Assembly: GCA_002269645.1 (NCBI GenBank)
Contig: NIVC01000606.1
Coordinates: 248,001-312,000, forward strand
DNA from: Macrostomum lignano
Lineage: Eukaryota
Reading direction: 5' to 3'
Length of the DNA: 64,000 nucleotides
This document shows, piece after piece, positions 12,401-47,342 of this stretch. The notes beneath the pieces were generated by a model. That model did no database searches. It saw only the letters and a program-made list of their open reading frames with translations, and was not told the DNA's origin. The stretch's first letter is position 1; every line of letters begins with the position of its first letter. The position numbers and the translations under genes were made by a program.

Positions 12401-15400
12401 GACACTGAAGATATATATGTACATTAGCCAAGCGCCACTGAAGAGGTACATGTACATTAGCCAGCGCCACTGAAGAGGTACATGTACATTAGCCAGCGCC
12501 ACTGAAGAGGTACATGTACATTAGCCAAGCGCCACTAAAGATGTACATGTACATTAGCCAGCGACACTGAAGATATATATGTACATTAGCCAAGCGCCAC
12601 TGAAGAGGTACATGTACATTAGCCAGCGCCACTGAAGAGGTACATGTACATGACAGCTTTAGACTGGAACACCGAGAACGGCAATTCATTAGAAATTCAT
12701 TGTGTTGTCCTGTGTCTCCGCATTTATGTACAAAACATAACCTGCTCATCCTCAGGTGCATCGAGATGCTGTGCACCAGAGATCACGGCCTAATTAACAG
12801 TGTCGACAGCGACGGCAACTCGGTTCTGCACTACGCCCGCGAGAAGGAGATCACCTACACCCTGTGCCACTATCCGCAGATCAATAAGAACTTGGTCAAT
12901 ACCAAGGGCGAGACGCCGCTGCACTCCGTGATCATCGAGATGTACAAGACCACCGATAAGAAGAAGAAGGAAGACTACCTGGATGTGATCATGACTCTGC
13001 TAGTGCTCGAGGCCGATGCTAGCATACCTAATATTGAGGGCGAGACTCCTCTGCACTCTGCCGTTCGGGTGAGTTTAATCATCCCCATATTAGGAGATTT
13101 CATTCACTTATCCTCTGAGCGAAGTTAATTCCATTGAATCCTTCAGAATCTCCCCAGTCTCATCCCATGGAATCTCTCACGAATCTTTCTATTTTCATCC
13201 CACAGAATCCCTTAAGAATCTCCCCATTTTATCCCACAGAATCCCTCACAAATCTCCCCATTTTCATCCCACAGAATCCCTTACGCGCTCGTAAGAATCT
13301 CCCCAGTCTCATCCCACAGAATCTCCCCAGTCTCATCCCACAGAATCCCTCATAAATCTCCCCATTTTCATCCCACAGAATCTCCCCAGTCTCATCCCAC
13401 AGAATCTCCCCAGTCTAATCCCACAGAATCCCTCACGAATCTCCCCATTTTCATCCCACAGAATCTCCCCAGTCTCATCCCACAGAATCCCTCACGAATC
13501 TCCCCATTTTCATCCCACAGAATCTCCCCAGTCTTATCCCAGAGAATCCCCCGAGAATCTCCCCAGTCTTATCCCACAGAATCCCCCAAGAATCTCCCCA
13601 GTCCCATCCCACAGAATCCCTCACGAATCTCCTGGTTCATCTCATAAAATCCCTTTAGAATATTTCCATTTAGTTTCATCCCTGAATTCGCATTTTCTTA
13701 CTTATTCTGGCACTCTTTCGGGTTGCGCATTCATAATTATGCTAAACATTTGTTCCAGACTCGCAACGTTGACGTAGTGCGCGCTCTAATCGTATTCGAA
13801 GCGGACGTTAACTGTCTGAATAAGCGAGGCCAGACTCCCAGGCACATCTTGTCTAGCGAAGAGGAGGGTCAGCCAGCTTTCGGGTCTGTTTGCTGCGTTC
13901 AGTACCTTCAACAGCATTAATTTTATTTAAAATAGCTGGCACCTTAATCTAATCACTGTTTTGTTCTTTGCAGAATTTTGCCCTACTTCCGTACCAGCAC
14001 CCGGGATCGGTGAGCGCTGTTTCAATCTTGATCTGAGGGCATTGAAATCTCTGTTTTTACATATATGAAAAGGACTATTCAATTCGCAGATCTAATATAC
14101 TGAAAATGAATAATTGAAGTTCTAAAGATGAGATTTGCAGATTGGGTTCTAATAGGGTGAGATTTTGTAGATTGAGTTCTTATAGGGCGGGATTTTGCAG
14201 ATTGAATTCTTTTAGGGTGAGATTTTGCAGATTGAGTTCTAATAGGGTGAGTTTTTGCAGATTGAATTCTTTTAGGGTGAGATTTTGCAGATTGAGTTCT
14301 AATAGGGTGAGATTTTGTAGATTGAGTTCTCATAGGGTGAGATTTCTCAGATTGAGTTCTCATAGGGTGAGATTTCTCAGATTGAGTTCTTATGGGGTTA
14401 GATTTTGCAGTTGGGGTTCTTATGGGGTGAGATTTTGCAGATTGAGTTCTCATAGGGTGAGATTTCTCAGATTGAGTTCTCATAGGGTGAGATTTCTCAG
14501 ATTGAGTTCTTATGGGGTGAGATTTTGCAGATTGAGTTCTTATGGGGTGAGATTTTGCAGATTGAGTTCTTATGGGGTGAGATTTTGAAGATTGAACTCT
14601 TATAGGGTGAGATTTTGCAGATTGAGTTCTTATGGGTGAGATTTTGAAGATTGAGTTCTCATAGGGTGAGATTTCTCAGATTGAGTTCTCATAGGGTGAG
14701 ATTTCTCAGATTGAGTTCTCATAGGGTGAGATTTCTCAGATTGAGTTCTCATAGGGTGAGATTTCGAAGATTGAGTTCTTAGGGGGAGATTTAGCATAAG
14801 GTTTATCGATTTTAAAATTCATAGACTTTAAGAAACTGTTCACATCACATTCTCACGCAGCGACGTGCTGATCTACACTCTTCACATGGTCGGCGCCAAC
14901 CGCTGCTCCAGCAGCACCTCCGGCTGCGGTGACGGCTGCCACTACCGTGGCAAGAACAATGGCACAGTGCCTGAGGCCTGTAAAATACCCGAGCTTGAGT
15001 CGCACTCGCCCGAGCCCGCTCCGAAATCGAATCCGTTGAGCGGCGCCTCAGCTGTTGCCTTGTTGAAGCGACTGGACAGCAGTCGGTCCAGCTCCGGCGG
15101 TGTCAACTTTCGCAACTCCTCGTCCAGCAGCTTGAACAGCGGCGGGAACGCGTCAGCCAGCGGCGGCGAGCAGCAGTCGCCTAGCGAGCCGTGCGTCTAC
15201 CTGGCGGAGTCGGCCAGCAGTCACAACATTCTGGCTAACGCCACCACTGCCAGCGTCGATGTGCCCGACAGTAGCGAAAGTGACGACGTTTCGCTGGCGT
15301 TGGACAACGCCGAAGGCGACACCCTGCTCTGCCTGGACGGCGGCGGCATTCGCGGCCTCATTCTGGCGCAGCTGATGCGGGCTATCGAGCGCCGGCTTAT

Positions 15401-17203
15401 TCAACACGAGCAGCAGCCGCAGGCGCAGCTAGTTGACTATTTTGACTGGGTGTCCGGCACCAGCACCGGCGCAATCTGCGCGTTGGCTCTGGGCGTTGGC
15501 AAAACTGCCGCATTTGGCCGCTGTCTGTATTTGAAGCTGAAGGATCGAATGTTTCAGGTACGACAGTGCTGCATTCTGAATGAGTCAAGGACCCTGGATG
15601 AGTCTAGGACTCTGGATGAGTCTAGGACCCTAAATGAGTCTAGGACCCTAAATGAGTCTAGGACCCTGGATGAGTCTAGGACCCGAATGAGTCTAGAACC
15701 CTAAATGATTCCAGGACCCCGAATGAGTCTGGGACCCTAAATGAGTCTATAGGACCCTGAATGAATCTAGGACCCTAAATGAGTCTATAGGACCCCGAAG
15801 GAGTCTAAGACCCTATATGAGTCTGGGACCCTAAATGAGTCTATAGGACCCCGAAGGAGTCTAAGACCCTAAATGAGTCTATAGGACCCTGGATGAATCT
15901 AGGACCCTGAAAAATGAGTCTAGGACCCTAATGAGTCTAGGACCCTAAATGAGTCTAGGACCCTGGATGAGTCTAGGACCCTGGATGAGTCTAGAACTTT
16001 TGTCGCATTACTGTGCTGTACTACTCATTACTACTATGTTAATTTTAACGTAGTTTAATTGGTTCCTACATATCGGCAGGGCTCGCGTCCCTACGCAGCC
16101 GACTTCCTGGAGCAGACGCTGCAAGAGATGTTCGGCGAGAACACCGTAATGACTGACATCCCGCTGAGTCGCTGCGGCATCATGGTGCACGCCCTGCTAG
16201 CTGACAGATTCCCGCCGCTGCTGCACACTTTCCGCAACTACGATCCGCCTTTGCCCGACCCTAAGCCGCTCAAGTCTTCGCCTGAGGTGGCCGTCTGCCG
16301 GCCCGAGGATCAGCTGGTCTGGCGGGCGGCCAGATCTTCCGGTGCGGCGCCGACATTCTTTAAATCCTGCGATCAGTACCTGGACGGCGGGCTGGTGGCT
16401 AACAACCCCACCCTGGATGCCCTGACTGAGGTCAGCTGTGCTCTATTCTTGCTTCTGTTTGCTTGCAGTGAATGAGTGAGTGAGTCAGTGAGTGAGTCAG
16501 TGAGTGAGTGAGTGAGTGAGTGGGTGAGTGAGTGAGTGAGTGAGTGGGTGAGTGAGTGAGTGAGTGAGTGGGTGAGTGAGTGAGTGAGTGAGTGATTGAG
16601 TGAGTGAGAGTGAGTGAGAGTGAGTGAGTGAGGGAGGGGCAGCAGAGACAGATGCATTGAATCTATCCGAGGATATTGCAGCCAAGCAAAGCATCTCCAC
16701 AATTTTCCTGTTCCCTCCCATCTCCCTCCCCGCAGCTGACCGCCTACTACAAGAAGAACTATAACCAGCTGCCAAAGCTGCGCTGCGTTGTATCTCTGGG
16801 CACTGGCCGAATCCCAGTGATCCCAATCTCCAACCGTGACGTGTTCATGCCATCCAATCCGGCCCAGCTGTTGCAGACTTTCCGCGGCATGAACAGCCTG
16901 GCCCAGATCATGGTTGAGCAGGCCACTAGCGCCGATTATCAGACTGTACGCCGGGCCCAGGCCTGGTGCGACTGTCTCGGCGCCCGCTATTACCGACTGT
17001 CGCCGCCAATCTCGGCGGACATACCCCTAGACTGCAAGAGTACGTCAATATTGATCCAGATGCTTTGGGAGACCGAAGTCTACTTGGCTAGGAGTACGGA
17101 CAAGCTCGACCAGCTGGTTCGGGTGCTCACAGCGCCGCACAGGGCGGCTAAAGCTGCTGCTACATTCTCGGCCGAGCCTGGGACGCCTAAAGTGGCTGAC
17201 TAG
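9471..17203 (+). CDS. PLA2G6: 85/88 kDa calcium-independent phospholipase A2 beta (ankyrin repeats + patatin domain), about 928 aa, 10 coding exons
   Basis: Exons 9471-9562, 9658-9768, 10496-10895, 11530-11723, 12756-13068, 13759-13883, 13974-14009, 14861-15557, 16080-16430, 16736-17203 (2787 nt, in frame). Ankyrin motifs [31 protein letters not shown] (x2), GQTPRHI. Patatin motifs [33 protein letters not shown]. The donor of exon 6 is the least certain boundary. Confidence 0.92.
9832..10445. repeat. 23-bp minisatellite, PLA2G6 intron 2
   Basis: GGGAGAGATGCTGGAGGTGGGAA unit. Confidence 0.95.
10901..11492. repeat. (CTGA/CTCA)n tetranucleotide array, PLA2G6 intron 3
   Basis: Continuous CTGACTGACTCA variants. 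Confidence 0.95.
11915..12690. mobile_element. Second, diverged and truncated copy of the 8766-9229 element, containing the 32-bp minisatellite
   Basis: Collinear with the reverse complement of 8965-9229 on both sides of the array: CTACTTTCAGTTTAGTAGCA, GCTATTTTATAA, GTAAACAA..CTTGCTA before it, and TGTACATGACAGCTTTAGACTGGAA..GAGAACGGCAAT after it. Confidence 0.75.
12095..12651. repeat. 32-bp minisatellite, PLA2G6 intron 4
   Basis: TACATGTACATTAGCCAGCGCCACTGAAGAGG, about 17 copies. Confidence 0.95.
13135..13630. repeat. About 24-bp minisatellite, PLA2G6 intron 5
   Basis: CCCACAGAATCTCCCCAGTCTCAT unit. Confidence 0.9.
14130..14790. repeat. 30-bp minisatellite, PLA2G6 intron 7
   Basis: GATTTTGCAGATTGAGTTCTTATAGGGTGA unit. 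Confidence 0.95.
15580..15996. repeat. 18-bp minisatellite, PLA2G6 intron 8
   Basis: GAGTCTAGGACCCTGGAT unit. Confidence 0.9.
16469..16631. repeat. (GTGA)n array, PLA2G6 intron 9
   Basis: GTGAGTGAGT with GTCA and GGTG variants. Confidence 0.95.
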
Positions 17204-22101: not shown

Positions 22102-23070
22102 TAATGCACCCCTAGATGGGCCACTCCAGCCGCATGGCCGCAGCGCCAAAACCCCGGGGTTACGGCCATAGACTGTACGTAGCCTCCGCTTCTCTTAAGA
22201 ATTTAGCACAGTACTCGAAGAATAGCACTTGAAAAGCATTAGAATCTAACTGATTCAGCAGCTAGTGTCTGTGGCCCTAACCCCGGGGGTTTTGGGGTCT
22301 CGGAGACGGCCGCTAAATACATTAGCAAATTTTGGAGTGACACATCTAGGTAATATAGAATCTGCGGTTAAGGCTGTTGATTTAAGGTCAGCTCTGCTTA
22401 CCATACGGCAGCTCAAGGTTAAACTTTCAGTCTATGATGCGTCTCTGGGTCTTTTGTGTCTTAGCGTGTCATGACGCATTCACTTTAAACTTGGCATCCT
22501 GTGTGCGTCTGGCGCTTAAACAACCTAAAGGATGCGACCCCAAGATGCAGTGCTGTCGTTGACATCAAGACAGCTTACAATACTCTAGTCCACTAAGTTT
22601 TCGTTGCAGATTCAAGGCAATGCCAATTGGGAAAGATACATGGGGCTGTGAGGCATCTGGCATCCAGAAGCGTGATTTCGAGCCAGTTTAATTATATATA
22701 TGAGGCTTAAAATTAAACTTCGTCATTTTGAACGGCATCGGCATTTTTAATATGGGCAAAAAAGCTGAATCTGGCAAAGCGCCCTAGTCTCGATCCTCAT
22801 TATAGAAAACAGCTTTTTGCGCGTTCTAGAATCTTGGAGTCAAGCTTCTTAAGTCGCCTGGTTAAAAGAGCATAAGTACTCGTAACGTCTTACTGTTCAC
22901 TTTATCATTATATTTCGGTTATTATCCTTATATTGCCGGTTCCTTATCCAGCAGCTGCTCGATAAAATGTATGCAACTTTTCGTTCAGCTAAGATTGCGC
23001 ATCAGGTTTGCACTTCTATTCAATTCAATCCAGTCTGTCTTCATGATCACTGACCACAGTGCTCAAGTGC

Positions 23071-23681
23071 TCAGTACTCCACTTCGTCGGTTTCGCGGCC
23101 AAATCGGAACGGCATGTGCACCGTGTCGTCGCGTTTGCCCCATCGGAACACATTGGCTCGCTTGCCCCATCGGAACACGTTGGCTCGCTTGCCCCAGCGA
23201 AAGACATTCGGAGCCCGCTTGCTCTCTGGCCAGTAGTAATAGACCTCTTCAGTTGATGGCGCCGGATACTCGCTCATCAGGATCCTGCCAGGCGCCATCC
23301 GTTTGCCGCGCTTCAATTCCAAAGCCTGAGAGTCCTCACCTGCGGGTTTTGTATCGAATAAAGATAATGAAGGAAGTGCCGTCTTGCGTCCGTCATCTTT
23401 GCTGATTTCATTTCAGCCGATTTCCTTAATTAGCAAAAATGGTTCCAGCATCCTAGAGTTGCATCCGCGATGCCGAAAATCAATTATGGAAAATATTTCG
23501 GGGCCTAGTTGCTGCTAGTGCTGGTTGACAGCCTAAGACTTTCAAATTTCAACTGTTGCTTTGATCGAAGACAGAGTGCAAGTTTCGCATATTCACCATT
23601 TGCAACGCGCGCGCTCGTTTGCGTAACCATCAGAAAGGCCAAGGCCAGGCCGCAGACCAGCATTGCTGTGTTTAGAAACAT
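23071..23681 (-). CDS. Neuropeptide precursor, 117 aa: APNVFRWamide, 2x ANVFRWamide, DDTVHMPFRFamide
   Basis: Exon 1 is 23681-23597 (signal peptide MFLNTAMLVCGLALAFLMVTQTSA; donor G|GTGAAT). Exon 2 is 23339-23071 (acceptor CCCGCAG). They join in frame (354 nt). Repeated peptides are each followed by amidation Gly plus KR or R: KR-APNVFRW-GKR-ANVFRW-GKR-ANVFRW-GKR-DDTVHMPFRF-GR. Confidence 0.9.
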
Positions 23682-24620
23682 TTCCAATCAGACTGTTGGC
23701 CAAATACTGCAGGAATGAAACGGTGCGGGATTTACATCGCATGGGCTTACAAATAGCTGCGATGTTCGTTACAAACTGCAGAGAAATCTTCACTTACCAA
23801 TTTAAGTTAGAAGGGCTACTTAACTCTGAGCAAATGAGTCAACTGCTGGTTGTAGACTGTCTGTTACTCAGTGGTGTGCTCATTCTTGATGGAGAGAATC
23901 TTTGCTTAAATAGGCTCCGAGTGCGATGAACCAGCTACTTGCTATTCGAATCCCCTGCAAAAAAACGCGATACAACAACATTGTAGCTGATTGGCTAGTT
24001 AAAAACATCATTTTGGGGGCGGACTTGAGCACCAAAAATGTATCTTGCCGCTCACTAGCTGGACAGTTTGCCTCTGCAAAATAGTCCATTTATGGAATCA
24101 ATAACAAAGTGACGACTTTTATTGCCGTACATGTGAAAGAAAAAACACCGTCGTGTCGTCGAGGATAAGAATCTGTGTCAACAGATGAATTGCAACGACA
24201 TGCGCATACATGTACACAATGAATGCCCTTCCATGTATGCATACATGTATACATATATATATGCCCTTCCACTTGACGCCCTGCGATTTATGCTATATAA
24301 TTTGACTATTGCGAAATAACCTTTTCAAAGAAAGCACATTTTATTTAAAAAACAGAAAAGATTATCGGTAGGTATCTATCTTCTAGGTATCCCTAATACT
24401 ATTTGGGCTATTCCAATATGATATAAGCATCCAACACTCGCAGACTTAATAATCTACGCAAAATTGATCGTAACAACCAAACCGATGTTATCGACAGTCG
24501 ACGTCTCCTCATTGTTTAGCAATTTGACGATCGTTGTTCGCACATTTTTAATGCAGAACAATCCATTACTACAGACAATGCATTGTCTGTAGGATCGTCA
24601 AACAGAAAAACAATGCAAAG

Positions 24621-26117: not shown

Positions 26118-29100
26118 ATGGCATTTGAGCAACCAGCAACGGTTCCAAATGAATTCAACCAGCTTGATTCAGGTAATTGAATATGTAGTCAGTTTATTCA
26201 GTTGATTCATAAAGTTCACTTTACTCTTATATATTGGGAAAAAAGGAATTTTTGTATGACAGTATTTTTTAGATTATACGATAAATTGTCGATAGTGAAA
26301 ACAATAGGCCCATGGAAAAAAAGTTTTTTTTATTTAGAATAATAATTAGAAATGATTGGTGCCACAAGAATTCAATTAATACATGACTGAATAATACTCA
26401 ATTAATTACTCCCGAGTTCTGAACAGTAGTTCTAGTTGCTCACTTACATCATTTGTAAATTCGAGTGTTTTTACACAGATGTCTGTGTGTGTTACAAGTT
26501 AACGTTAAAAATATTTATCACGCTACATGCAATTATTGCTAAAGTTAATGTTAAACTAAAAGCCAATAACTTTATTGAATGATCTATTGTAAATATAGCA
26601 ATATAAGCTTCCATAATCTTTCTTTAGTATAGTATTTTAACGCATATCAGAACAAAGAAATAATATGACATGTGCATTAATTTTTTTATTTTAGAAAGCA
26701 ATAATTACACCTATTAAACATTGTTTTTTACAGTATTTTTTGTTTCCATACGAATTTTATCAAAATTTTCAGTTTTTAAAAAATGTAAAAAATGTTTTTT
26801 ATTTAATTTAGACTGGCTATGCTTAATTTATATTCTGATACAATAAGTAAGCAATATTTCAACTAATACAAGCATGTGACATGTCTGCTGTGTAATTGTT
26901 AGTGAACATTAGCATTAAAATTAGCATCATAAAAAGCATATCTAGTAGATAGATACATTTTTTGTGAATTTTGGATTTAGTTCACAAAAAAAATTTATTA
27001 ATTCTAAATTTTTATGAGTTGAATTCATATAAGAGGCTTGTTAAATTCCCTTCAACAACGCCCCACAGGCAACAGCGACGAGGAGGCCAACGAGGAGGGC
27101 GTGGTTGGCAACGTTAGCAAATTCTGCGTCACGCCCCCCAGCTACACGGGCAAGCCGAAGAAGGGCCACCTGGTGTTCGACGCCTGCTTCGAGGGCGGCA
27201 ACCTGGGCCGGGTGGACTTCATCAGCGAGTTCGAGTACGACTTGTTCATCCGGCCGGACACTTGCAACCAGCGCTACCGGGTCTGGTTCCACTTCTCCGT
27301 GGAGAATGTCAAAGCCGACCAGGTTGGTGCTTGGCTATACACCAACATCACTACTTTATGTTGATTCATTCAGATATTGAGTCTGGAGAACATGTCAGTT
27401 AATACCGGTTACTGCCATTTATACCATAGCTACAGGAATCCTCTCCTAATACTAAAGTTGGTGCGATGATTGTTTGTTTGTTTGTCTGTTTGTTTGTGTG
27501 TTGCATAACTCCTCCTAGAATACTTGCAAGTCAGCGTTGAAACTTATATGGGGAAACTGCAAATTTTCCGGGGACTGCAGTGGGCTATTTCAATTTTTTA
27601 TTTTCACATTTTAAGATCCCTAAAAAAGCAGAAAACTGATTTCCTAACCTTCTCTGGACACTTTTTCTGCTCGGAGCCGAAAATTTGCATGATTTTGAGC
27701 GATTGCGCCACAACTTTTTCCTATCTCTGTAGTGTATTTTCTCGCCAGTGGGGTTGGTCGCATTCTCAGTGGCAGCGTGTGTACAAGCGGACCCCGGCTG
27801 AAAAATTGAACTGTGTGTATTTCGTGGGGTGGTGGGTAAGTAAGCGCAATTATATGGCTATTGTGCTGAGATTCAATTGGTTTTATTATCAGCGCCTTTC
27901 AATTGACTGCCCTGTGCATTGGTTAGACAGTGAAATTCAATGAATAAACTTGCGGGCCTCTTTAGCAGGCAGTGAACGTATGAACGTACACTCAATATTG
28001 CAATGCTATAAATCGGCAAATTTCAAACTCAGACTGTTGCTGGAGTTTTTAACTTTGAGAGGAGAGACTTATATTGCTGGAAAGAACTTGCAACGCTGAG
28101 TTCGGGGATATAAATTGTTTGCTTTAAATATGAAAACTAAATGCTCTGCATTGGAAAAACTATTTCCATACTTTTAACTTATTGCAAAGATTGTACTCAT
28201 TTTAGGAGTTCAATGGTGTTCGACTGACCCCCCAACAGTTGGGGGGGGGGGGTTCAATTTCTAATTGCCACTGCGTATTGGAAGGGGGTCGGTCGCTGTG
28301 TATTGGATGGAGGGTTGATTTAGATTGCGCAATATTTTTGTTAACTTTAACTGAGACTGATACTGACTGACTTAGAAATACGAGCGTAAATTGCGCAATC
28401 TTTTGATTCAATTATCTCATTTTTTATCGGACCTTTTCAACACGCAGCTCTGTGCAGCTCCAACCCTAACCCTAACCCTAACCACTGAATCCTGAGAGTT
28501 TAGTTGTTTGACGGAGAAACTTTCGATTGAGTCCAGTTTCACGGAGAGGATTTCTGTTTCGCGGAGAGGATTTCGATCGTGTTCAGTTTCTCAGAGAGGA
28601 TTTTGATGGATTTGGAGAACAGTTAGATAATGGGATTCGGGTCTTGGGATTCAGCTGATGGAGTTCAGGGAATGGAATTCCGGTGATGGGAGTTCTTCCC
28701 CTTTCTCCTCCATCGGAGGAGTTGGCCTCGTATATACTAAAAATGGTCTGTCTGTGTCTATGTGATCGATTAGAGAAAAAATGGCTGGACCGATTTTGTT
28801 CGAACTTGCACTGTTCGATCAGAAATTTTCCCGTGACGGTACATGCATCGTGGCTAAGAAATTGCTCGATGCTAAAGGCATTAAATATTCGAAAAACATG
28901 CTTTTTTGCAAAGGTCAAGCAAACTTTTCGACTTGAAATGCATTGTAAGAATGCTAGAGAAAAAACTGACTGGTTGAATTCTGATTCTGAAATAGATTGC
29001 ATCATAACTGAATTGTAACTCCGACTTGAATTGAAAATGCAGTGTGGAAGCGGACACCAGACTTGATTTAAATTGCGTAACCATATTGTTAACTGATACC

Positions 29101-32100
29101 GACTGACTGAAAAACTGATTATGTCATAACTGCTTCGTGTAATTTACTCTATGCTTGGATTTTAAACTGTTGAATTATATATATATATAAGTGCAAAATT
29201 TGATGTTATCAAAACGATAAGAGCTAGCCTAGAGGTGAACAAACTGAACTGCTAAATGCAGCGACGATGGTTCATATTTTCATAGAGTGGAATTTTTTTA
29301 ATTAAAGCTTTTCAACGTCAGGAAAACTAAAAGACTTTAAAAAAAAGCGTCATATAAAAATCATAGATGCGTCATTTAAAAAATCATAGAAGCGTCATGT
29401 AAACAATCATAGAAGCGTCATGTAAAAAATCGTAGAAGCGTCATATAAAAATCGTAGAAGCGTCATTTAAAAAATCATAGAAGCGTCATGTAAAAAATCA
29501 TAGAAGCGTCATGTAAAAAAATCATAGAAGCGTCATGTAAACAATCGTAGAAGCGTCATATAAAAATCATAGAAGCGTCATGTAAAAAATCGTAGAAGCG
29601 TCATGTAAAAAATCGTAGAAGCGTCATATAAAAATCGTAGAAGCGTCATGTAAACAATGATAGAAGCGTCATGTAAAAAATCATAGAAGCGTCATTGAAA
29701 AATCATAGAAGCGTCTTTTAAAAAATCATAGAAGCGTCATATAAAATCGTAGAAGCGTCATGTAAACAATCATAGAAGCGTCATGTAAACAATCATAGAA
29801 GCGTCATGTAAAAAATCATAAAAGCGTCATGTAAAAATCATAGTAGCGTCATGTAAAAATCATAGAAGCGTCATGTAAAAAATCGTAGAAGCGTCATGTA
29901 AAAAATCGTAGAAGCGTCATATAAAAATCATAGAAGCGTCATATAAAAATCATAGAAGCGTTATGTAAACAATCATAGAAGCGTCATGTAAACAATCATA
30001 GAAGCGTCATGTAAACAATCATAGAAGCGTCATGTAAACAATCATAGAAGCGTCATGTAAACAATCATAGAAGCGTCATGTAAACAATCATAGAAGCGTC
30101 ATGTAAACAATCATAGAAGCGTCATGTAAACAATCATAGAAGCGTCATGTAAACAATTATAGAAGTGTCATGTGAACAATCATAGAAGCGCCATGTAAAA
30201 AATCATAGAAGCGTCATGTAAACAATCATAGAAGCGTCATGTAAACAATCATAGAAGTGTCATGTGAACAATCATAGAAGCGTCATGTAAACAATCATAG
30301 AAGCGTCATGTAAAAAATCATAGAAGCGTCATTGAAAAATCATAGAAGCGTCTTTTAAAAAATCATAGAAGCGTCATATAAAATCGTAGAAGCGTCATGT
30401 AAACAATCATAGAAGCGTCATGTAAACAATCATAGAAGCGTCATGTAAAAAATCATAAAAGCGTCATGTAAAAATCATAGTAGCGTCATGTAAAAATCAT
30501 AGAAGCGTCATGTAAACAATCATAGAAGCGTCATGTAAACAATCATAGAAGCGTCATGTAAACAATCATACAAGCGTCATATAAACAATCATAGAAGCGT
30601 CATGTAAAAAATCATAAAAGCGTCATGTAAAAATCATAGTAGCGTCATGTAAAAATCATAGAAGCGTCATGTAAAAAATCGTAGAAGCGTCATATAAAAA
30701 TCGTAGAAGCGTCATATAAAAATCATAGAAGCGTCATATAAAAATCATAGAAGCGTCATGTAAACAATCATAGAAGCGTCATGTAAACAATCATAGAAGC
30801 GTCATGTAAACAATCATAGAAGCGTCATGTAAACAATCATACAAGCGTCATATAAACAATCATAGAAGCGTCATGTAAACAATCATAAAAGCGTAATGAA
30901 ACAATCATAGAAGTGTCATGTAAACAATCATAGAAGCGTCATGAAACAATCATAGAAGCGTCATGTAAAAAATCATAGAAACGTCATGTAAAAATCATAG
31001 AAGCGTCATGTAAAATCATAGAAGCGTCATGTAAAATCATATAATCGTCCTGCAAAAACTCGTAGAAGCGTCATGTAAAAAATCATAGTAGCGTCATGTA
31101 AAAAATCATAGAAGCGTCATGTAAAAATCGTAGAAGCTTCATGTAATAATCATAGAAGCGTTATGTAAAAATGATAGAAGCGTCATATAAACAATCATAG
31201 AAGCGTCATGTAAACAGTCATAGAAGCGTCATGAAACAATCATAGAAGCGTCATGTAAAAATCATACAAGCGTCATATAAACAATCATAGAAGCGTCATG
31301 TAAACAATCATAAAAGCGTCATGAAACAATCATAGAAGCGTCATGTAAAAATCATAGTAGCGTCATGTAAAAATCATAGTAGCGTCATGTAAAAAATCAT
31401 AAAAGCGTCATGTAAAAATCATAGAAGCGTTATGTAAAAATGATAGAAGCGTCATATAAAAAATCATAGAAGCGTCATGTAAACAATCATAGAAGCGTCA
31501 TGTAAAAATCATAGAAGCGTCATGTAAACAGTCATAGAAGCGTCATGAAACAATCATAGAAGTGTCATGTAAACAATCATAGAAGCGTCATGTAAACAAT
31601 CATAGAAGCGTCATGTAAAAATCATAGTAGCGTCATGTAAAAAATCATAAAAGCGTCATGTAAAAATCATAGAAGCGTTATGTAAAAATGATAGAAGCGT
31701 CATATAAAAAATCATAGAAGCGTCATGTAAACAATCATAGAAGCGTCATGTAAAAATCATAAAAGCGTCATGTAAACAGTCATAGAAGCGTCATGAAACA
31801 ATCATAGAAGCGTCATGTAAAAATCATAGAAGCGTCATGTAAATCATAGAATCGTCCTGCAAAAATCGTAGAAGCGTCATATAAAAATCATAGAAGCGTC
31901 ATGTAAACAGTCATAGAAGCGTCATGAAACAATCATAGAAGCGTCATGTAAAAATCATAGAAGCGTCATGTAAACAATCATAGAATCGTCCTGCAAAAAT
32001 CGTAGAAGCGTCATATAAAAATCATAGAAGCGTCATGTAAACAATCATAGAAGCGTCATGAAACAATCATAGAAGCGTCATGTAAAAATCATAGAAGCGT

Positions 32101-35100
32101 CATGTAAACAATCCTAGAAGCGTCATGTAAACAATCATAGAAGCGTCATGTAAAAATCATAGTAGCGTCATGTAAAAAATCATAAAAGCGTCATGTAAAA
32201 ATCATAGAAGCGTTATGTAAAAATGATAGAAGCGTCATATAAAAAATCATAGAAGCGTCATGTAAACAATCATAGAAGCGTCATGTAAACAATCATAGAA
32301 GCGTCATGTAAACAGTCATAGAAGCGTCATGTAAAATATCATAGAAGCGTCATATAAAAATCATAGAAGCCTCCTTTAAAAACTAATGAAAGTGTCATTT
32401 AAAAAATTAAGAAGCATCATGGTAGAATAAAAGAAGCGTCATGTCAGACATGAAAGGTGTCATGTAAAAATTAAATGAAGCTATAGTGCTGTGCTAGGGA
32501 GAAAAACTGAGACGTCAAGGCTCACAGAGAATAACTGAGATTATGGGGCCGTTTCTGAGATGTCAAAGCAACAGTCAGAAGCTACTTCAAAGTTCATTTA
32601 CTTTACTCAATTTTTTTATTACATTCTTTGTTGGCTCGCCACGGGGGGGGCGCTGATAGAAGAAGAGTCATGTAAAAAATAAAAGTAGCACTATGTATAC
32701 ATAAAAGAAAAGTCATGTCGAAGTTAAAAGATTCATTTGGGAATTGCTACGATGTCAAAGCGAGGGAATCGTTATAGTGCTGTGATTCTTAAAGAAGAAA
32801 TCACTAAAATGTCAAGGCTTAGGGGAGAAGAATTGCTGAGATTCAAGGCTTTAGGTTGGGTTAAAGTTAGGTTTAGGTCAGGTGTGGGTTGAGGGTTATA
32901 TTTTATCGGGTTTCAAGGTTAACGGGGGATTTTTCAGATTTCAAGGTTTATGGAGGCCATCGCTGACATGTCAAGGCTTACGGGGGGGGGGGATAGCTGA
33001 CATGTCAAGGCTCACGGGGGTATAAATGAGATTTCAAAGCTAAAGTCAGAAGCTACATGTAGTTTATTGAAAACTTTTTATTACATTATTTGATGCCTCC
33101 TCAGGGGAGGGATCGCTGATAAAAAAAGCGTAATGTAAAAAATAAAAGAAGCTTCATGTCGAAGTTAAGAGATTCATTTGGGAATCCATTGCATTGCTGA
33201 GATGTCAAGGGGGGGAGTTGATATGTTAAAGCTTGTGGGGGGATTACTGACATGTCAAGGCTTACAAGGTTTGACAGGAGATTTTTTAAGATTTCAAGGA
33301 TACATGTAGCTTATTAAAAAAACGTGTATTGCATTTCTTTGGCTCCCCAACGGGGGGCGTAGATTGCTAGTAAATATGCTAATGATGTATAGCAATGTAA
33401 AATGATACTATTTTGTAATTTTTGTTTTAATTTAGTAGATTGGATATCTGTTTCAGAGACTCGTAGCCAGAATTTTACCAGGCACCAGGGGCTTTAGCAC
33501 CAGCGGCTTTAGCACCAGCGGCTTTAGCACCAGCGGCTTTAGCACCAGCTGCTTTAGCACCAGCGGCTTTAGCACCAGCGGCTTTAGCACCAGCGGCTTT
33601 AGCACCAGCGGCTTTAGCACCAGGGGCATTAGCACCAGGGGCATTAGCACCAGGGGCATTAGCACCAAGGGCTTTAGCACCAGGGGGAATTAGCACCAGG
33701 GGCTTTAGCACCAGGGGGCTTTAGCACCAAGGGCATTAGCACCAGGGGCTTTAGCACCAGGGGGCTTTAGCACCAAGGGCATTAGCACCAGGGGGAATTA
33801 GCACCAGGGGCTTTAGCACCAGGGGCTTTAGCACCAGGGGGCTTTAGCACCAAGGGCTTTAACACCAGGGGGAATTAGCACCAGCGGCTTTAGCACCAGG
33901 GGCATTAGCACCAAGGGCTTTAGCACCAGGGGGAATTAGCACCAGGGGCTTTAGCACCAGGGGGCTTTAGCACCAAGGGCATTAGCACCAGGGGCTTTAG
34001 CACCAGGGGGCTTTAGCACCAAGGGCTTTAGCACCAGGGGGCTTTAGCACCAAGGGCTTTAGCACCAGGGGGAATTAGCACCAGGGGCTTTAGCACCAGG
34101 GGGCTTTAGCACCAAGGGCTTTAACACCAGGGGGAATTAGCACCAGGGGCTTTAGCACCAGGGGGCTTTAGCACCAAGGGCTTTAGCACCAGGGGGAATT
34201 AGCACCAGGGGCTTTAGCACCAGGGGCTTTAGCACCAAAGGCATTAGCACCAGGGGGAATTAGCACCAGGGGCTTTAGCACCAGGGGCATTAGCACCAAG
34301 GGCTTTAGCACCAGGGGGAATTAGCACCAGGGGCTTTAGCACCAGGGGGCTTTAGCACCAAGGGCATTAGCACCAGCGGCTTTAGCACCAGGGGGAATTA
34401 GCACCAGGGGCTTTAGCACCAGGGGGCTTTAGCACCAAGGGCTTTAACACCAGGGGGAATTAGCACCAGGGGCTTTAGCACCAGGGGGCTTTAGCACCAA
34501 AGGGCTTTAGCACCAGGGGGAATTAGCACCAGGGGCTTTAGCACCAGGGGCTTTAGCACCAGGGGGCTTTAGCACCAAGGGCTTTAGCACCAGGGGGAAT
34601 TAGCACCAGGGGCTTTAGCACCAGGGGGCTTTAGCACCAAGGGCATTAGCACCAGGGGCTTTAGCACCAGGGGGCTTTAGCACCAAAGGGCTTTAGCACC
34701 AGGGGGAATTAGCACCAGGGGCTTTAGCACCAGGGGGCTTTAGCACCAAGGGCTTTAGCACCAGGGGGAATTAGCACCAGGGGCTTTAGCACCAGGGGCT
34801 TTAGCACCAAGGGCTTTAACACCAGGGGGAATTAGCACCAGGGGCTTTAGCACCAGGGGGCTTTAGCACCAAAGGGCTTTAGCACCAGGGGGAATTAGCA
34901 CCAGGGGCTTTAGCACCAGGGGGCTTTAGCACCAAGGGCTTTAGCACCAGGGGGAATTAGCACCAGGGGCTTTAGCACCAGGGGCTTTAGCACCAAGGGC
35001 TTTAACACCAGGGGGAATTAGCACCAGGGGCTTTAGCACCAGGGGGCTTTAGCACCAAGGGCTTTAGCACCAGGGGGAATTAGCACCAGGGGCTTTAGCA

Positions 35101-38100
35101 CCAGGGGCTTTAGCACCAAGGGCTTTAACACCAGGGGGAATTAGCACCAGGGGCTTTAGCACCAGGGGGCTTTAGCACCAGGGGCTTTAGCACCAGGGGC
35201 TTTAGCACCAGGGGCTTTAGCACCAAAGGCATTAGCACCAGGGGCGCCTGCACTATTATAAATGACTTATAAATTTTTCAACAAATCAATAATTAAACTT
35301 GTCTATTGTTAATTTCAGCGAGTGATCTTCACCATAGTGAACTTCAGCAAGACCAAGTCTCTCTATAGAGAAGGCATGACGCCCGTTGTTAAATCCACCA
35401 GCCGGCCAAAATGGTGCGCTCCATCAACTTTGTTGTTTTTTATTTTTTAATACAATCGATAATTTAAGGACTTTGATTACTTTATAATTGACCGATTCTT
35501 CCTATTCTACTGTTAGTAAAGATGAAAGTAGGCGACTAGTAACTTTTTATTTTTTTGTCATTAACCACCCCTCAACCCCAGGGTCCGGCTGCCCCTAAGC
35601 ACGTGTACTATTACCGCTGCCCGGAGCACCGCAAGAACTACGTGCTCAGCTTTGCGTTCTGCTTCGACAAAGAGGATGACGTCTACCAGTTTGCCTACTG
35701 CTACCCGTACACCTACACCCGGCTGCAGGCCTACCTGGACAGCCTGGAGCGCAAGGGCCTGGACTATGTGCAGCGCGACCTACTCGGCCTCAGCGTGCAG
35801 CAGCGGCGGCTCGACCTGCTGACCGTCAGCCACCCGGACAACCTCACCGATGAGGCACAGAAGCGAGTGGTCTTCATCACCGCCAGGGTTCACCCGGGCG
35901 AGACCCCGGCCTCCTTCGTGTGCCAGGGCCTCATCGACTTTCTGGTCAGCTCGCATCCCATTGCAAAGCAGCTGCGCGACTACCTGGTGTTCAAAATTAT
36001 CCCCATGCTGAACCCTGACGGCGTCTACCTGGGCAACTACCGGTAAATTAAAGACTGCAGCTGCCCGGTCCCTTCCACAGTCCCTTCCCCGGTTCCTTCC
36101 CCGGTTTCTTCCCAGAATTTTTGTCCGGTCTCTTCCCCGGTTCCTTCCCCGGTTCCTTCCCCGATCACTTCCCCGGTTCCTTCCCCGATCACTTCCCCGG
36201 TTCCTTCCCCGGTTCCTTCCCCGATCACTTCCCCGGTTCCTTCCCCGGTTCCTTCCTCGGTTCCTTCCCCGGTCCCTTCCCCGGTCCCTTCCCCGGTCCC
36301 TTCCCCGTTTCCCTTCCCCGGTTCCTTCCCCGGTCCCTTACCCGGTCACTTCCCTGGTCCCTTCGCCGGTCCCCTCCGCCGTTCTTTCCCAGAATCTTTG
36401 CCCGGTCTCTTCCCAGGTTCCTTCCCCGGTTCCTTCCCTGATTCCTTCCCAGAATCTTTGCCTAGTTTCTTCTCAGGTTCTTTCTCTGGTTTTTCCCCCT
36501 GTCCTTCCCGGGTTCTTTCCCCGGTTCTTTCTTCGGTTCTTTCCCCTGTCCTTTCTCCGGTTCTTTCCCCTGTCCTTTCTCCGGTTCTTTCCCCTGTCCT
36601 TTCTCCGGTTCTTTCCCCTGTCCTTTCTCCGGTTCTTTCCCCTGTCCTTTCTCCGGTTCTTTCCCCTGTCCTTTCTCCGGTTCTTTTCCCTGTCCTTTCT
36701 CCGGTTCTTTCCCCTGTCCTTTCTCCGGTTCTTTTCCTGTCCCTTTCCGGGTTCTTTCCCCTGTCTCTTCCCCGGTTCCTTCCTCGGTTTTTTCTCCGGT
36801 TTCTTCGTTGCTCTTTCCCCGGCTCTCCGGTTCTTAAACCAGTTCACTCTCCGAATCATCCAGCTCATTTTCTTGTTTCCCTGGTTTTCACCAGTTTTAG
36901 CCCGGGTTCTTTCCTTCCTTAGCAGCTCCTTGCCCTGACCATTAGACGCTCTAAAATCTCTAAAAAGAGCAAGTCTCACAGCGTAAACATTGAAGACTCT
37001 CACCTCTCACCCGCAGCTGCTCTCTGATGGGTTTCGATCTGAACCGGCACTGGCAGGAGCCCTCGCCCTGGGCTCATCCCACTATCTATGCCTGCAAGAA
37101 GGCCATGATCGATATGTACAACTCCAAGGTACGAGTGCTTCTGTGCGTGCGGCCTCGCCTTTTGAAAGAGTTTTAGTCGTGAAATTTTAACCTGCCAAAT
37201 ATTCTTAGGACCACGATATCGACTTTTTCTGCGACCTGCACGCGCACAGCACCCTGATGAACGGCTTCATGTACGGCAACACTTTTGACGATCCCGACAA
37301 GCAGGAGAGGCAGAACGTCTTTCCCAAGCTGTTCCAGCAGAATGCCGAGGATTTTAGTTTGACTAACACCAACTTTAATCGAGACGCTGTGAAGGCCGGA
37401 ACTGGGCGAAGGTTGGTTCTACTTGAGTGTGATCGTACTTGGGTGCTATCGTACTTGGTGCTATCGCACTTCTGCACTTCAGTGCTATTGTAATTGGGTG
37501 CTTGCGTACCTGGGTGCTTGCATACTTGGTTGCTTGCGTACTTGAGTGCTGTGCGTACTTGGTTGTGATCGTACTTGGGTGCTATCGTACTTAAGTGTGA
37601 TCGTACTTTGGTGTGATCGTATTTGGGTGCATCTTACTTCGGTGCTATTGTACTTGGGTGTGTTCGTATTTAAGTGCTTGCGTACTTGGGTGTGATCGTA
37701 CTTGGGTGTTATAGTACTTTGGTACGACCACACTTAGGTGCTTGCGTATTTGGTTGTTATCGTACTTGGATGTGATCGTACTATTATGGTACCAGCGTAC
37801 TTAAGTACCAGCATACAATTAAATATACAAACAAAGTACTTAACGCAATTTAGTACTGACTTATTTGGGTGCTAGCTTACTTACAATATAGCAATTGTAG
37901 TTCGTAGCATACTTGCGAGCAGCGTACTTAATGCACTTAAGTGCTAGCGTATTTTCGTAATTGAGTGTTAGCGTACTGCAAGAACTTGTAACGCCCTAAG
38001 TTCACCTTAATACTGCAATTACTGCGGAATCTTTATCTGGTTTTATTCTACGAGTATATTCATATTAAAATTGCCTCTAAACCTCAAAAACCGAACAGAG

Positions 38101-40041
38101 CCCTTGTTGGCATATTTGACGACTCCGTGCTGTGCTACACTCTGGAGGTGTCGTTCTTCAGCTACATGGCCAACAGTTCCGGTGGCACACTGCCCTACAC
38201 CGAGGAGGGATGTGAGTGTGCTCGATGTAATCTGGCTTGTTTGTGTGTGTCAATCTAGTGAACTGCCACATAGGGTAAATTTTCAGCCTCGGTTGGTAGC
38301 TATAGTTGAGAATTTAGGCAAGCGTACCTGAACCAAAGTATTGTTAAAGTGCAAGCGTACCCTGAACCAAAGTACTGTTAAAGTGCCAGCGTACCTGAAC
38401 CAAAGTACTGTTAAAGTGCAAGTGTACATGAACCAAAATACTGTTAAAGTTCAAGGGTACCTGAACCAAAATACTGTTAAAGTTCAAGGGTACCTGAACC
38501 AAAATACTGTTAAAGTTCAAGGGTACCTGAACCAAAGTACTGTTAAAGTACAACCGTACCTGAACCAAAGTACTATTTAAGTTCGAGCGTACCTAAACTG
38601 AAGCCCATATTTAAGTGCACTCGAACCCAAACGCTTTGCAGACGCCAAACTCGGCCGAAACTTGGCGCGCACATTCCTGGACTATTATAAAGTTCAAAGC
38701 GTCATTCCTTCGATGCCAGTAGCAGGTGCTACTGGAAAGTCAAAAGGCGGTGGCAGCGGTGGCGCCAGCGGAGGAGGCGCGGGCGGCAAGGACAGCAGCT
38801 CGCGGTGAGGCTGACCCAGAGCTTTGCTAATTACATGCACGCGACTGATTGGATTCGGAAAGAGAATGATGAAAATTTTAACAAAAGTAAAATATTTTTG
38901 TTGATTTCTTCCAGTCTGCAGCTGCGCCCCTGCTCTCGTTACTCGACCAGAAATCGCTGGATCAATGTAAACCTCTGTTCCACTTGCAATGGCCGGGGTA
39001 ACCCCCTTACAGCACCCGACACTGGTCTCTATTGTGCATGCTCTGCATGTAGTCCACTTCTTCTAGTCTTTCTCGGTGCTCTTGTCCCTCCCTGCCTCCA
39101 TTTATGTCCATGGGAGAGATATTCCCGAGTAGTTAAATTGCTAAATCCAATTAAATTATTGCATTATTTATTATCTTTCGGCATGCTTAGTCCATTTGAC
39201 TAATTCAATAATGTTTAGCTCTGCATTGTCAAGAGGGAAATTACTGCCTGCATCACAACATAATCATCGTCTTTTAAAGCCAGTTAAAATACGTTTTTTT
39301 GGCATGTTTAACTGAGCAAATGTTTACTGTTTATTATTATTAAGTTTACACCTGTTTATTAGGGCGGCCACCTTGAAAAAATGAGTGTCTGGCAACAAGA
39401 ATTTCACTGCTGCTTGCGAGTTGCCTGAGATACGGGCAGACACACAGGCAGACACACAGGCAGACACACACACGGGCAGGCAGACAGGCAGACACACAGG
39501 CAGACAGGCAGACACACGGGCAGACACACAGGCAGACACACACACGGGCAGGCAGACAGGCAGACACACAGGCAGACACACGGGCAGACACACGGGCAGA
39601 CACACAGGCAGACACAAGGCAGACACACACACAGGCAGATACACGGGCAGACACACAGGCAGACACACGGGCAGACACACAGGCAGACACACAGGCAGAT
39701 ACACGGGCAGACACACAGGCAGACAGGCAGACACAGGCAGACACACAGGCAGACACACAGGCAGACAGACAGACACACAGGCAGACAGGCAGACACACGG
39801 ACAGACACACAGGCAGACACACAGGCAGACAGGCAGACACACGGGCAGACACACAGGCAGACACACAGGCAGACACACAGGCAGACACACGGGCAGACAC
39901 ACAGGCAGACAGGCAGACACAGGCAGACACACAGGCAGACAGGCAGACACAATCCGCACCACTCCGCACTGCAGATACTTGATGGGAGAGGCGAGCAGTA
40001 GCGCCGGCAGGTTCGGCAGCGGCGGTGGCCGAGCGAAGTGA
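26118..40041 (+). CDS. AGBL4: Cytosolic carboxypeptidase 6 (M14D tubulin deglutamylase); apparent 1-nt frameshift at 35592-35595
   Basis: Exons 26118-26172 (probable), 27069-27322, 35319-35413, 35582-36042, 37017-37128, 37209-37411, 38099-38211, 38642-38804, probable last exon 39975-40041. Translation closely follows AGBL4 as I recall it: [122 protein letters not shown]. Zn ligands and catalytic Glu are intact. The C-terminal exons are uncertain. Confidence 0.92.
27444..27620 (+). mobile_element. Possible non-autonomous Helitron/Helentron-like fragment
   Basis: TCCTAATACTAAAG, then a (GTTT/GTCT)n microsatellite, then GCATAACTCC...GTTGAAACTT. This layout resembles Lep1/DINE-type elements as I recall them. 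No 3' hairpin-CTAG was identified. Confidence 0.35.
28462..28483. repeat. Short telomere-like (CCCTAA)3 tract
   Basis: AACCCTAACCCTAACCCTAACC. Confidence 0.7.
28728..28815 (+). mobile_element. Possible non-autonomous Helitron/Helentron-like fragment
   Basis: TATATACTAAAAATG, then GTCTGTCTGTGTCT, then GGCTGGACCGATTTTG..GAACTTG. Same layout as the 27444 fragment. Confidence 0.35.
29345..32365. repeat. 22-24-bp satellite, about 3 kb, AGBL4 intron 2
   Basis: ATCATAGAAGCGTCATGTAAACA unit with A-run variants. Confidence 0.97.
33481..35245. repeat. 15-16-bp minisatellite with higher-order periodicity, AGBL4 intron 2
   Basis: TTAGCACCAGGGGCT unit; recurring four-unit block starting GGGGAATTAGCACCAG. 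Confidence 0.97.
36066..36800. repeat. Pyrimidine-rich 12- and 24-bp minisatellites, AGBL4 intron 4
   Basis: TTCCTTCCCCGG, then GTTCTTTCCCCTGTCCTTTCTCCG. Confidence 0.9.
37424..37800. repeat. Degenerate about 16-bp minisatellite, AGBL4 intron 6
   Basis: GTACTTGGGTGTGATC variants. Confidence 0.8.
38322..38590. repeat. 33-bp minisatellite, AGBL4 intron 7
   Basis: GTACCTGAACCAAAGTACTGTTAAAGTGCAAGC unit. Confidence 0.9.
39434..39949. repeat. GCAGACAC(AC)n array, last AGBL4 intron
   Basis: GGCAGACACACA and GGCAGACA variants. Confidence 0.95.
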
Positions 40042-46074: not shown

Positions 46075-46160
46075 AACATGCTGCTCGTGATCTGAGTTTT
46101 AACTGCTTTTTTTAACCTCACGGCTTCAAAATGACATATTTTGACAGCCTAATCAGGGTC

Positions 46161-47342
46161 CGTGCCAGTCCAGTCAGTTGTGGGTCTGTGCCAGTCCAGT
46201 CAGTTGTGGGTCTGTGCCAGTCCAGTCAGTTGTGGGTCTGTGCCAGTCCAGTCAGTTGTGGGTCTGTGCCAGTCCAGTCAGTTGTGGGTCTGTGCCAGTC
46301 CAGTCAGTTGTGGGTCTGTGCCAGTCCAGTCAGTTGTGGGTCTGTGCCAGTCCAGTCAGTTGTGGGTCTGTGCCAGTCCAGTCAGTTGTGGGTCTGTGCC
46401 AGTCCAGTCAGTTGTGGGTCTGTGCCAGTCCAGTCAGTTGTGGGTCTGTGCCAGTCCAGTCAGTTATGGGTCTGTGCCAGTCCAGTCAGTTGTGGGTCTG
46501 TGCCAGTCCAGTCAGTTGTGGGTCTGTGCCAGTCCAGTCAGTTGTGGGTCTGTGCCAGTCCAGTCAGTTGTGGGTCTGTGCCAGTCCAGTCAGTTGTGGG
46601 TCTGTGCCAGTCCAGTCAGTTGTGGGTCTGTGCCAGTCCAGTCAGTTGTGGGTCTGTGCCAGTCCAGTCAGTTGTGGGTCTGTGCCAGTCCAGTCAGTTG
46701 TGGGTCTGTGCCAGTCCAGTCAGTTGTGGGTCTGTGCCAGTCCAGTCAGTTGTGGGTCCGTGCCAGTCCAGTCAGTTGTGGGTCCGTGCCAGTCCAGTCA
46801 GTTGTGGGTCTGTGCCAGTCCAGTCAGTTGTGGGTCTGTGCCAGTCCAGTCAGTTGTGGGTCTGTGCCAGTCCAGTCAGTTGTGGGTCTGTGCCAGTCCA
46901 GTCAGTTGTGGGTCTGTGCCAGTCCAGTCAGTTGTGGGTCTGTGCCAGTCCAGTCAGTTATGGGTCTGTGCCAGTCCAGTCAGTTGTGGGTCTGTGCCAG
47001 TCCAGTCAGTTGTGGGTCTGTGCCAGTCCAGTCAGTTGTGGGTCTGTGCCAGTCCAGTCAGTTGTGGGTCTGTGCCAGTCCAGTCAGTTGTGGGTCTGTG
47101 CCAGTCCAGTCAGTTGTGGGTCTGTGCCAGTCCAGTCAGTTGTGGGTCTGTGCCAGTCCAGTCAGTTGTGGGTCTGTGCCAGTCCAGTCACTTGTGGATC
47201 TGTGCCAGTCCAGTCAGTGTGGGTCTGTGCCAGTCCAGTCAGTTGTAAGTCTGTGCCAGTCCAGTCAGTTGTAGGTCTGTGCCAGTCCAGTCAGTGGGGG
47301 TCTGTGCCAGTCCAGTCAGTGGGGGTCTGTGCCAGTCCAGTC
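46161..47342. repeat. Highly homogeneous 26-bp minisatellite, intergenic
   Basis: GTGCCAGTCCAGTCAGTTGTGGGTCT, about 45 copies. Confidence 0.97.

Follow-up and report, generated by a model that had tools for sequence, protein, structure and literature searches.

A two-exon VFRWamide and PFRFamide precursor gene of Macrostomum lignano and its probable place in the LFRFamide/RYamide (sNPF-type) family

What is encoded on the minus strand at positions 23071-23681 of this stretch of Macrostomum lignano DNA, and to which family of signalling peptides does the product belong? The whole stretch of 64,000 nucleotides (nt) that was analysed is called the window below. An earlier reading of its letters (the original prediction) had joined two fragments of open reading frame (ORF) at these positions into a neuropeptide precursor with three VFRWamides and one PFRFamide. 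The preferred answer, to which a probability of about 0.85 was given, is that the gene is genuine, expressed and made of two coding exons, and that it encodes a prepropeptide of 117 amino acids (aa) belonging to the lophotrochozoan LFRFamide/RYamide (sNPF-type) family, with one APNVFRW-NH2, two ANVFRW-NH2 and one DDTVHMPFRF-NH2 as its predicted amidated peptides. Reviews and receptor phylogenies equate the LFRFamide/RYamide family with sNPF-type (sNPF/PrRP) signalling; in the literature, activation of an sNPF-type receptor has been shown for oyster LFRFamides only.

The proposed two-exon model was found to be exact to the base. The start codon ATG is at 23681, and the ORF of exon 1, which encodes MFLNTAMLVCGLALAFLMVTQTSARVAN, runs into a GTGAAT donor after its last base at 23597 (..GCA AAT G|GTGAAT). 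The acceptor side of the intron (..AAAACCCGCAG) is poor in pyrimidines. The joined coding sequence (CDS) is 354 nt long and in frame, and its translation is the 117 aa that had been quoted. Six-frame translation of the window contained three R-[FWY]-G-[KR]-R sites, all within the precursor ORF, and shuffles of the window (n = 30) gave at most one such site per ORF. Because this motif density is far above that of the shuffles, the precursor ORF is not a chance reading frame. Tandem Repeats Finder reported a 27-nt coding repeat at 23135-23208.

Homologues were collected in two ways. HMMER, run exhaustively against 1.84 billion cluster representatives, returned 82 matches at E<1e-3, and a profile search that retained names returned 171. 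Named matches included the 'LFRFamide' precursors of Sepia pharaonis, Charonia, Ambigolimax, Deroceras and Candidula, the LFRFa precursor of Lymnaea, the Sepia officinalis 'FMRFamide-related peptide 2', and many bivalve and cephalopod proteins. Named annelid and nemertean matches came from Platynereis dumerilii (F8UKT9, presumably the RYamide precursor), Owenia, Paralvinella, Lineus and Tubulanus. The homologues showed three architectures. In the first, tandem xLFRF or xFRY copies, often with one or two LFRW copies, are followed by a single final peptide of the form ..PH[TV]P[FW]RFG[RDE]..; the motif H-x-P-[FW]-R-F-G was located 2-17 residues from the C-terminus in about 35 of the 82 HMMER matches. 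The M. lignano precursor has a tail of this type, VHMPFRFGRE, 8 residues from its end. The second architecture comprises gastropod precursors with ..FHWG as the last peptide. Precursors of the third are FRWamide-only, with an N-terminal motif C-x2-4-C-x6-14-C-x-C and no tail (Urechis FRWamide, Capitella ELT90794 and relatives).

The occurrence of RWamide and RFamide products in one precursor had been regarded as unusual, a view that the homologues did not bear out. At least 14 tail-bearing members of annelid or nemertean type combine RW copies with RY or RF copies; the RYamide gene of Platynereis has LFRWamides as well as xxRYamides among its products, and the Patinopecten precursor mixes RF- and RY-amides. 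PHTPFRFamide is the last peptide of the LFRFamide precursors of Sepia and Patinopecten, and the last peptide of Crassostrea is 15-16 residues long and ends in PFRFamide (printed as SVDNEPTHPFRFamide; PMC4208409). Judged from these sequences, the combination is a family trait.

Profiles were built from 86 tail-bearing members, with every Macrostomum sequence excluded. The tail-only profile scored 24.7 bits against the precursor (E 1e-6) and no more than 3.9 bits against 2000 shuffles of it. The full-length profile was collinear on the precursor, with 45.2 bits over the repeat region followed by 15.1 bits over the tail. The precursor has a signal peptide (heuristic call), tandem x-[LIVF]-[FLM]-R-[FYW]-Gly units with dibasic flanks (APNVFRWGKR, ANVFRWGKR, ANVFRWGKR), and a single last ..H-x-P-[FW]-R-F-Gly followed by R/D/E and acidic residues (VHMPFRFGRETDEVEY). 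Its gene has an 85-nt signal-peptide exon, a phase-1 intron and the peptides on the next exon, and two outgroup genes were compared for this structure. In the Mytilus edulis gene (P0010), coding exon 1 is exactly 85 nt, the phase-1 intron is 10.8 kb and all peptides are on exon 2; in the Owenia fusiformis gene (P0033), 85 nt lie between the ATG of MMGW.. and a phase-1 GTAAGT donor. Family membership was assigned because of the tail profile, the collinear full-length profile and this conserved gene structure, and the same three lines bear out the affinity to LFRF/LFRY/LFRWamide (sNPF-type) peptides at which the original prediction had guessed. For its further comparison with flatworm VFRFamide peptides, no supporting evidence was found.

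A likeness of this kind might also arise by convergence of short RF/RW-amide motifs, in which case the gene would encode a lineage-specific flatworm FMRFamide-like (npp/flp) precursor. Such motifs are short and arise repeatedly, M. lignano has at least two further VFRWamide genes (P0013/BOX15_Mlig026077 and Mlig032062.g1), and no other flatworm orthologue was recognised among the named matches of the profile search. Convergence would, however, have to reproduce three independent features at once, namely a 9-residue tail (H-x-P-F-R-F-G-R-E) at the matching terminal position, the collinear order of repeats and then tail, and an exon 1 of exactly 85 nt with a phase-1 intron, as found in a mollusc and an annelid. 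It was considered very unlikely.

The single-sequence search placed Urechis FRWamide as its best named distant match (E 8e-11), the similarity of the mature peptides is highest to the Urechis/Capitella group, and one protein of that group (P0035) contains the exact core NVFRWGKR. These observations would suit a member of the annelid 'FRWamide' family (Urechis unicinctus FRWamide, Capitella 'LFRWamide') in which the PFRF tail is secondary. The N-terminal four-cysteine (4-Cys) motif is, however, present in seven members of that family (P0002, P0014, P0018, P0039, P0062 and P0083, with a variant in P0035), whereas the only Cys of the M. lignano precursor is in its signal peptide. The H-x-P-F-R-F-G tail is found in none of the 4-Cys group. 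In addition, residues 1-149 of the Capitella protein (P0083) are contiguous in the genomic sequence (L010) with no intron, whereas the M. lignano gene is split after codon 28. Membership of this family is thus largely refuted, and the alternative was rated improbable. The Capitella model ELT90794 itself (L010, KB310768.1, 501-1411) leaves the final FRW copy by a splice (..SSPAVFR|SRVDRP..) that leads to a C-terminus of unrelated sequence, and it is labelled 'C-type lectin domain-containing' in UniProt; its 3' exon is probably mis-modelled.

Several points weigh against the preferred answer. Precursors made of short RF/RW-amide repeats are open to convergence, and the xFRxGKR unit, being repeated, inflates HMMER scores. 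In the tail, Val-His-Met-Pro stands where other members have Pro-His-Thr/Val-Pro. The signal-peptide call is only heuristic, the transcript-based model at the window locus has two ANVFRW copies and not three, and processing, amidation, neuronal expression and the receptor are inferred from sequence and by analogy. To the want of another flatworm orthologue among the named matches is added that the planarian 'sNPF-type' sequence DAA33926.1 (cited in PMC7314547, Yanez-Guerra et al.) was not recovered by the homology searches.

Three other peptide families were tried and rejected. In precursors of luqin/RYamide type (RWamide in ambulacrarians), one peptide alone follows the signal peptide immediately, and a C-terminal pair of Cys is conserved; the M. 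lignano precursor has multiple copies, and its propeptide is without Cys. NPY/NPF precursors have a single 36-40-aa peptide that ends in RPRF/Y-amide, and an intron interrupts the codon for the Arg of the terminal RF/RY (PMC7314547); here the peptides are 6-10 aa long and the only intron follows the signal peptide. The FMRFamide-related family of Pfam (PF01581, FARP) gave no match at E<=1, and neither the precursor nor its paralogue nor either of two homologues was assigned to any family by Pfam.

The gene had been called hidden and likely to have been missed by annotation, but it is neither. An exact-sequence look-up of the 117 aa returned GenBank PAA56779.1 (BOX15_Mlig021438g1) and UniProt A0A1I8G2F4 (UniRef100_A0A1I8G2F4), which has the automatic label 'FMRFamide-related neuropeptides'. 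PAA56779.1 is annotated at a near-identical sister locus (L003) and needs exactly a junction of the 23597/23339 type. The window locus has an RNA-seq-derived gene model of its own, BOX15_Mlig013963 (P0001, g1/g2), of 108 aa. In the protein search it was 92% identical to the 117-aa precursor, the sole difference being one ANVFRWGKR unit fewer (one of copies 2-3), and at this locus the gene is therefore annotated one repeat short. The original prediction had also provided for a precursor already described. In that respect the sequence is public, and a literature search (FRWamide, the peptide cores, Mlig gene identifiers, Macrostomum sNPF, flatworm npp) found no description of the precursor, which is thus undescribed in print.

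Three loci encode the precursor. The first (L001; contig NIVC01000606.1, assembly GCA_002269645.1) was 100% identical to window positions 13071-33681 over 20,611 bp. The other two (L002 and L003) are near-identical gene copies on two further contigs, with flanks that are 97-99% identical and with matching neighbours, an M14 carboxypeptidase gene and a patatin/ankyrin gene. The DNA of each locus has three repeats and encodes the identical 117-aa protein; the differences amount to three in the CDS, all synonymous, and two intron positions. The assembly paper accounts for this redundancy by the duplicated chromosomes of the DV1 line that was sequenced; at >=95% identity, duplicated sequence makes up 180-312 Mb of the assembly. 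The GenBank gene models were derived from a genome-guided transcriptome, in which RNA-seq and a de novo transcript assembly were mapped with BLAT, so that the gene has transcript support. To arrive at 108 aa, the models at the window locus and at L002 have to leave out 27 nt of repeat that the genomic DNA contains. The paralogue BOX15_Mlig026077 is likewise 149 aa with 8 copies in the DNA (L006/L007, 3001-3560) and 129 aa with 6 copies as annotated. On the most economical reading, the 108-aa model is probably a collapse of tandem repeats in short-read transcripts that were mapped back with a gap; alternatively, it may represent a real two-copy allele.

A non-functional sequence, either a chance ORF or a decaying pseudogene copy, might be suspected where about 42% of the window is minisatellite DNA, the assembly is redundant (assembly paper) and database models disagree on the repeat number. 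Against this, each of the three loci retains an intact frame, the differences in the CDS being synonymous throughout, the gene models are derived from RNA-seq, homology extends deeply across phyla, and the processing motifs are far denser than in shuffled sequence. A non-functional origin was regarded as hardly credible.

Two further observations were made at the edges of the gene. On the minus strand at 23707-23720, a pyrimidine-rich stretch that ends in CAG (tttcattcctgcag) precedes the ATG by 25 nt. It may be an acceptor, either for spliced-leader trans-splicing or for an intron in the 5' untranslated region; trans-splicing is common in M. lignano (assembly paper). A 947-aa protein model (P0005) has its start at Met43 of the precursor, changes frame within the third repeat to follow an overlapping minus-strand ORF (23025-23207) and runs on into sequence that looks non-coding. 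It is evidently a spurious gene call.

The precursor was then compared with known systems. Mollusc LFRFamide precursors (Sepia officinalis/pharaonis, Crassostrea gigas, Patinopecten yessoensis, Mytilus edulis, Lymnaea) share with it a signal peptide, tandem copies of x-[LF]-[FL]-R-[FY]-G-KR type and a single last peptide of ..PHTPFRF-G-R-E-E type near the C-terminus; Mytilus also shares the 85-nt coding exon 1 and phase-1 intron. The M. lignano repeats are, however, all Trp-amides (VFRW) and not LFRF or LLRF, there are three copies in 117 aa as against precursors of ~150-200 aa, and the tail has V-H-M-P instead of P-H-T-P. In gastropod members, unlike in the M. lignano gene, the tail is replaced by ..FHWG. 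Annelid and nemertean RYamide (sNPF-type) precursors (Platynereis F8UKT9 = P0057, Owenia P0033, Lineus P0055, Tubulanus P0106) mix FRWamide with RY/RF copies and end in PHVPFRFG(R/D/E)E. The nemertean and Owenia tails have G-R-E/D like the M. lignano protein, and Owenia shares the 85-nt/phase-1 exon 1. RWamide copies are a minority in these precursors (1-2 of ~8-10) and have the core LFRW or IFRW, whereas the M. lignano repeats are without any RY or RF copy. Of the tail-bearing members in the match lists, none but the M. lignano gene has a W-amide in every repeat, and this gene is also unusually short.

Annelid FRWamide precursors (Urechis MT162138 = P0002; Capitella ELT90794 = P0083) have multiple xVFRW/IFRW-G-KR copies like the M. 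lignano gene, and differ from it in their N-terminal 4-Cys motif, in having no PFRF tail and, for Capitella, in having no intron after the signal peptide. According to the literature, one ancient family unites lophotrochozoan LFRFamide with arthropod sNPF and deuterostome PrRP (receptor orthology, activation of an sNPF-type receptor by oyster LFRFamide). The arthropod sNPF motif xPxLRLRF/W-amide is unlike the M. lignano peptides, and PrRP is a single long peptide that is itself interrupted by an intron, also unlike the gene described here.

Other VFRWamide genes of M. lignano were considered alongside it. The paralogue BOX15_Mlig026077 (P0013; L006/L007, contigs NIVC01004577.1 and NIVC01001908.1) encodes one GTTFRW and seven [QP]SGVFRW peptides. 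It resembles the gene in the window in its signal peptide, in a phase-1 intron just after it (88 nt) and in tandem xSGVFRW-G-KR copies; unlike that gene, it has 8 genomic copies, no PFRF tail and no Tyr/Trp-rich spacer. For a protein designated P0003, a missing signal-peptide exon was sought up to 3 kb upstream in L004/L005, and nothing convincing was found there. Koziol et al. 2016 reportedly covered 12 parasitic species. The M. lignano propeptide Mlig032062.g1 yields GRTNNKNVFRWa, which was tested on DEG/ENaC channels in a published study and gave no response.

A tentative scenario, which we think rather doubtful, is that M. lignano preserves a snapshot of FRWamide-only genes arising from an ancestral sNPF-type gene. 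Under this scenario, the gene in the window may have turned every repeat to VFRW-amide while keeping the ancestral PFRFamide tail and the 85-nt/phase-1 exon, and BOX15_Mlig026077 may have kept the intron and lost the tail. A separate derivation from that ancestor is conceivable for the annelid 4-Cys FRWamide family. The gene in the window would then be the first clearly orthologous flatworm sNPF-type precursor to be documented by sequence, tail and gene structure together.

Features of the gene and of the predicted propeptide are collected in the table. The signal-peptide call was made heuristically: hydropathy is highest over residues 7-20, TSA|RV after residue 24 agrees with the -3/-1 rule, and the signal peptide is probably cleaved after Ala24. 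Cleavage at basic sites was predicted from general neuropeptide biochemistry. After removal of the signal peptide (24 aa), prohormone convertases would cut at K38R/GK41R42, K69R70, K79R80, K88R89, K97R98 and the single R110 that follows PFRFG. Carboxypeptidase trimming and then PAM amidation at Gly would yield one APNVFRW-NH2 (predicted [M+H]+ 888.484), two ANVFRW-NH2 (791.431) and one DDTVHMPFRF-NH2 (1263.594); the products first proposed thus stand as predictions from the sequence. A non-amidated 26-aa Tyr/Trp-rich spacer peptide and an acidic C-terminal heptapeptide would be further products. The start of the spacer (KR-MAPGRIL) aligns with annelid KR-AAPGILRWGKR copies, and, speculatively, the spacer may be a decayed peptide copy.

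Table. Coordinates of the precursor gene and of its predicted processing products in the window
Feature	Position	Strand	Description
Coding exon 1	23597..23681	-	85 nt; Met1-Asn28 and first base of the Gly29 codon
Signal-peptide-coding part of exon 1	23610-23681	-	predicted 24 aa, MFLNTAMLVCGLALAFLMVTQTSA; first propeptide residues after it
Intron	23340..23596	-	257 nt, GTGAAT...CCCGCAG, GT..AG, phase 1
Coding exon 2	23071..23339	-	266 nt coding and stop TGA 23071-23073; all cleavage sites and predicted peptides
First basic cleavage cluster, K38-R-G-K-R42	23299..23313	-	prohormone-convertase or furin-type, predicted
26-aa Tyr/Trp-rich spacer, MAPGRILMSEYPAPSTEEVYYYWPES	23221..23298	-	no Gly before the next KR, so not amidated
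APNVFRW-Gly, copy 1	23191..23214	-	flanked by KR 23215-23220 and KR 23185-23190
ANVFRW-Gly, copy 2	23164..23184	-	followed by KR 23158-23163
ANVFRW-Gly, copy 3	23137..23157	-	followed by KR 23131-23136
DDTVHMPFRF-Gly, C-terminal tail peptide	23098..23130	-	followed by single Arg 23095-23097
Acidic C-terminal extension, ETDEVEY	23074..23094	-	homologues end in ..GREE(D/E)-rich tails

By analogy with the oyster and arthropod sNPF systems, the peptides would leave neurons and act on rhodopsin-type G-protein-coupled receptors of the sNPF/PrRP family, and signalling by these receptors might modulate feeding, energy state, reproduction or motility/locomotion. In Urechis larvae, the apical organ and the nerves of the ciliary bands express FRWamide, which hints at a motor or ciliary role of the W-amides, by analogy with a peptide of a different sub-family. 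Under the doubtful scenario given above, two signalling channels would be driven by a single precursor, provided that its W-amides and its PFRFamide have different receptors.

The precursor is not a new kind of signalling molecule. With it, flatworm neurobiology gains a well-anchored sNPF-type ligand gene in M. lignano, a model species open to transgenesis and RNA interference, and Platyhelminthes are added to the phyla with the PFRFamide tail and the 85-nt/phase-1 exon structure. Tail and exon structure are useful markers of orthology where short peptides are otherwise hard to place. The probable collapse of tandem peptide repeats in M. lignano gene models is a systematic annotation problem that affects predicted peptide copy number.

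The surroundings of the gene are rich in repeats. The ~42% of the window mentioned above is made up of 34 minisatellite or simple-repeat arrays, a share well above the 15% given genome-wide for simple and tandem repeats (assembly paper). The arrays include 29345-32444 (23-nt unit x137), 33482-35245 (15-nt x115), 50301-53351 (18-nt x163), 43804-45154 and 46156-47342, and the long 'ORFs' of the window are mostly translations of such arrays. An M14 carboxypeptidase gene (PF18027 N-domain and PF00246) lies on the plus strand at ~26118-27439 and 33371-39951 and continues beyond. It is annotated at L002/L003 and maps into the window, and it is absent from the gene table of the window's contig. Between its two blocks the window has ~5.9 kb of extra DNA, including a 3.1-kb 23-nt minisatellite. 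The enzyme was considered as a prohormone-processing carboxypeptidase, and no functional link is claimed because PF18027 appears to be an N-domain of cytosolic-carboxypeptidase type and not CPE/CPD-like. A patatin-like phospholipase gene with ankyrin repeats (932-aa product), a neighbour at all three loci, ends on the plus strand at 17203, and the ORFs at 14865-15704 and 16676-17203 are probably exons of this gene.

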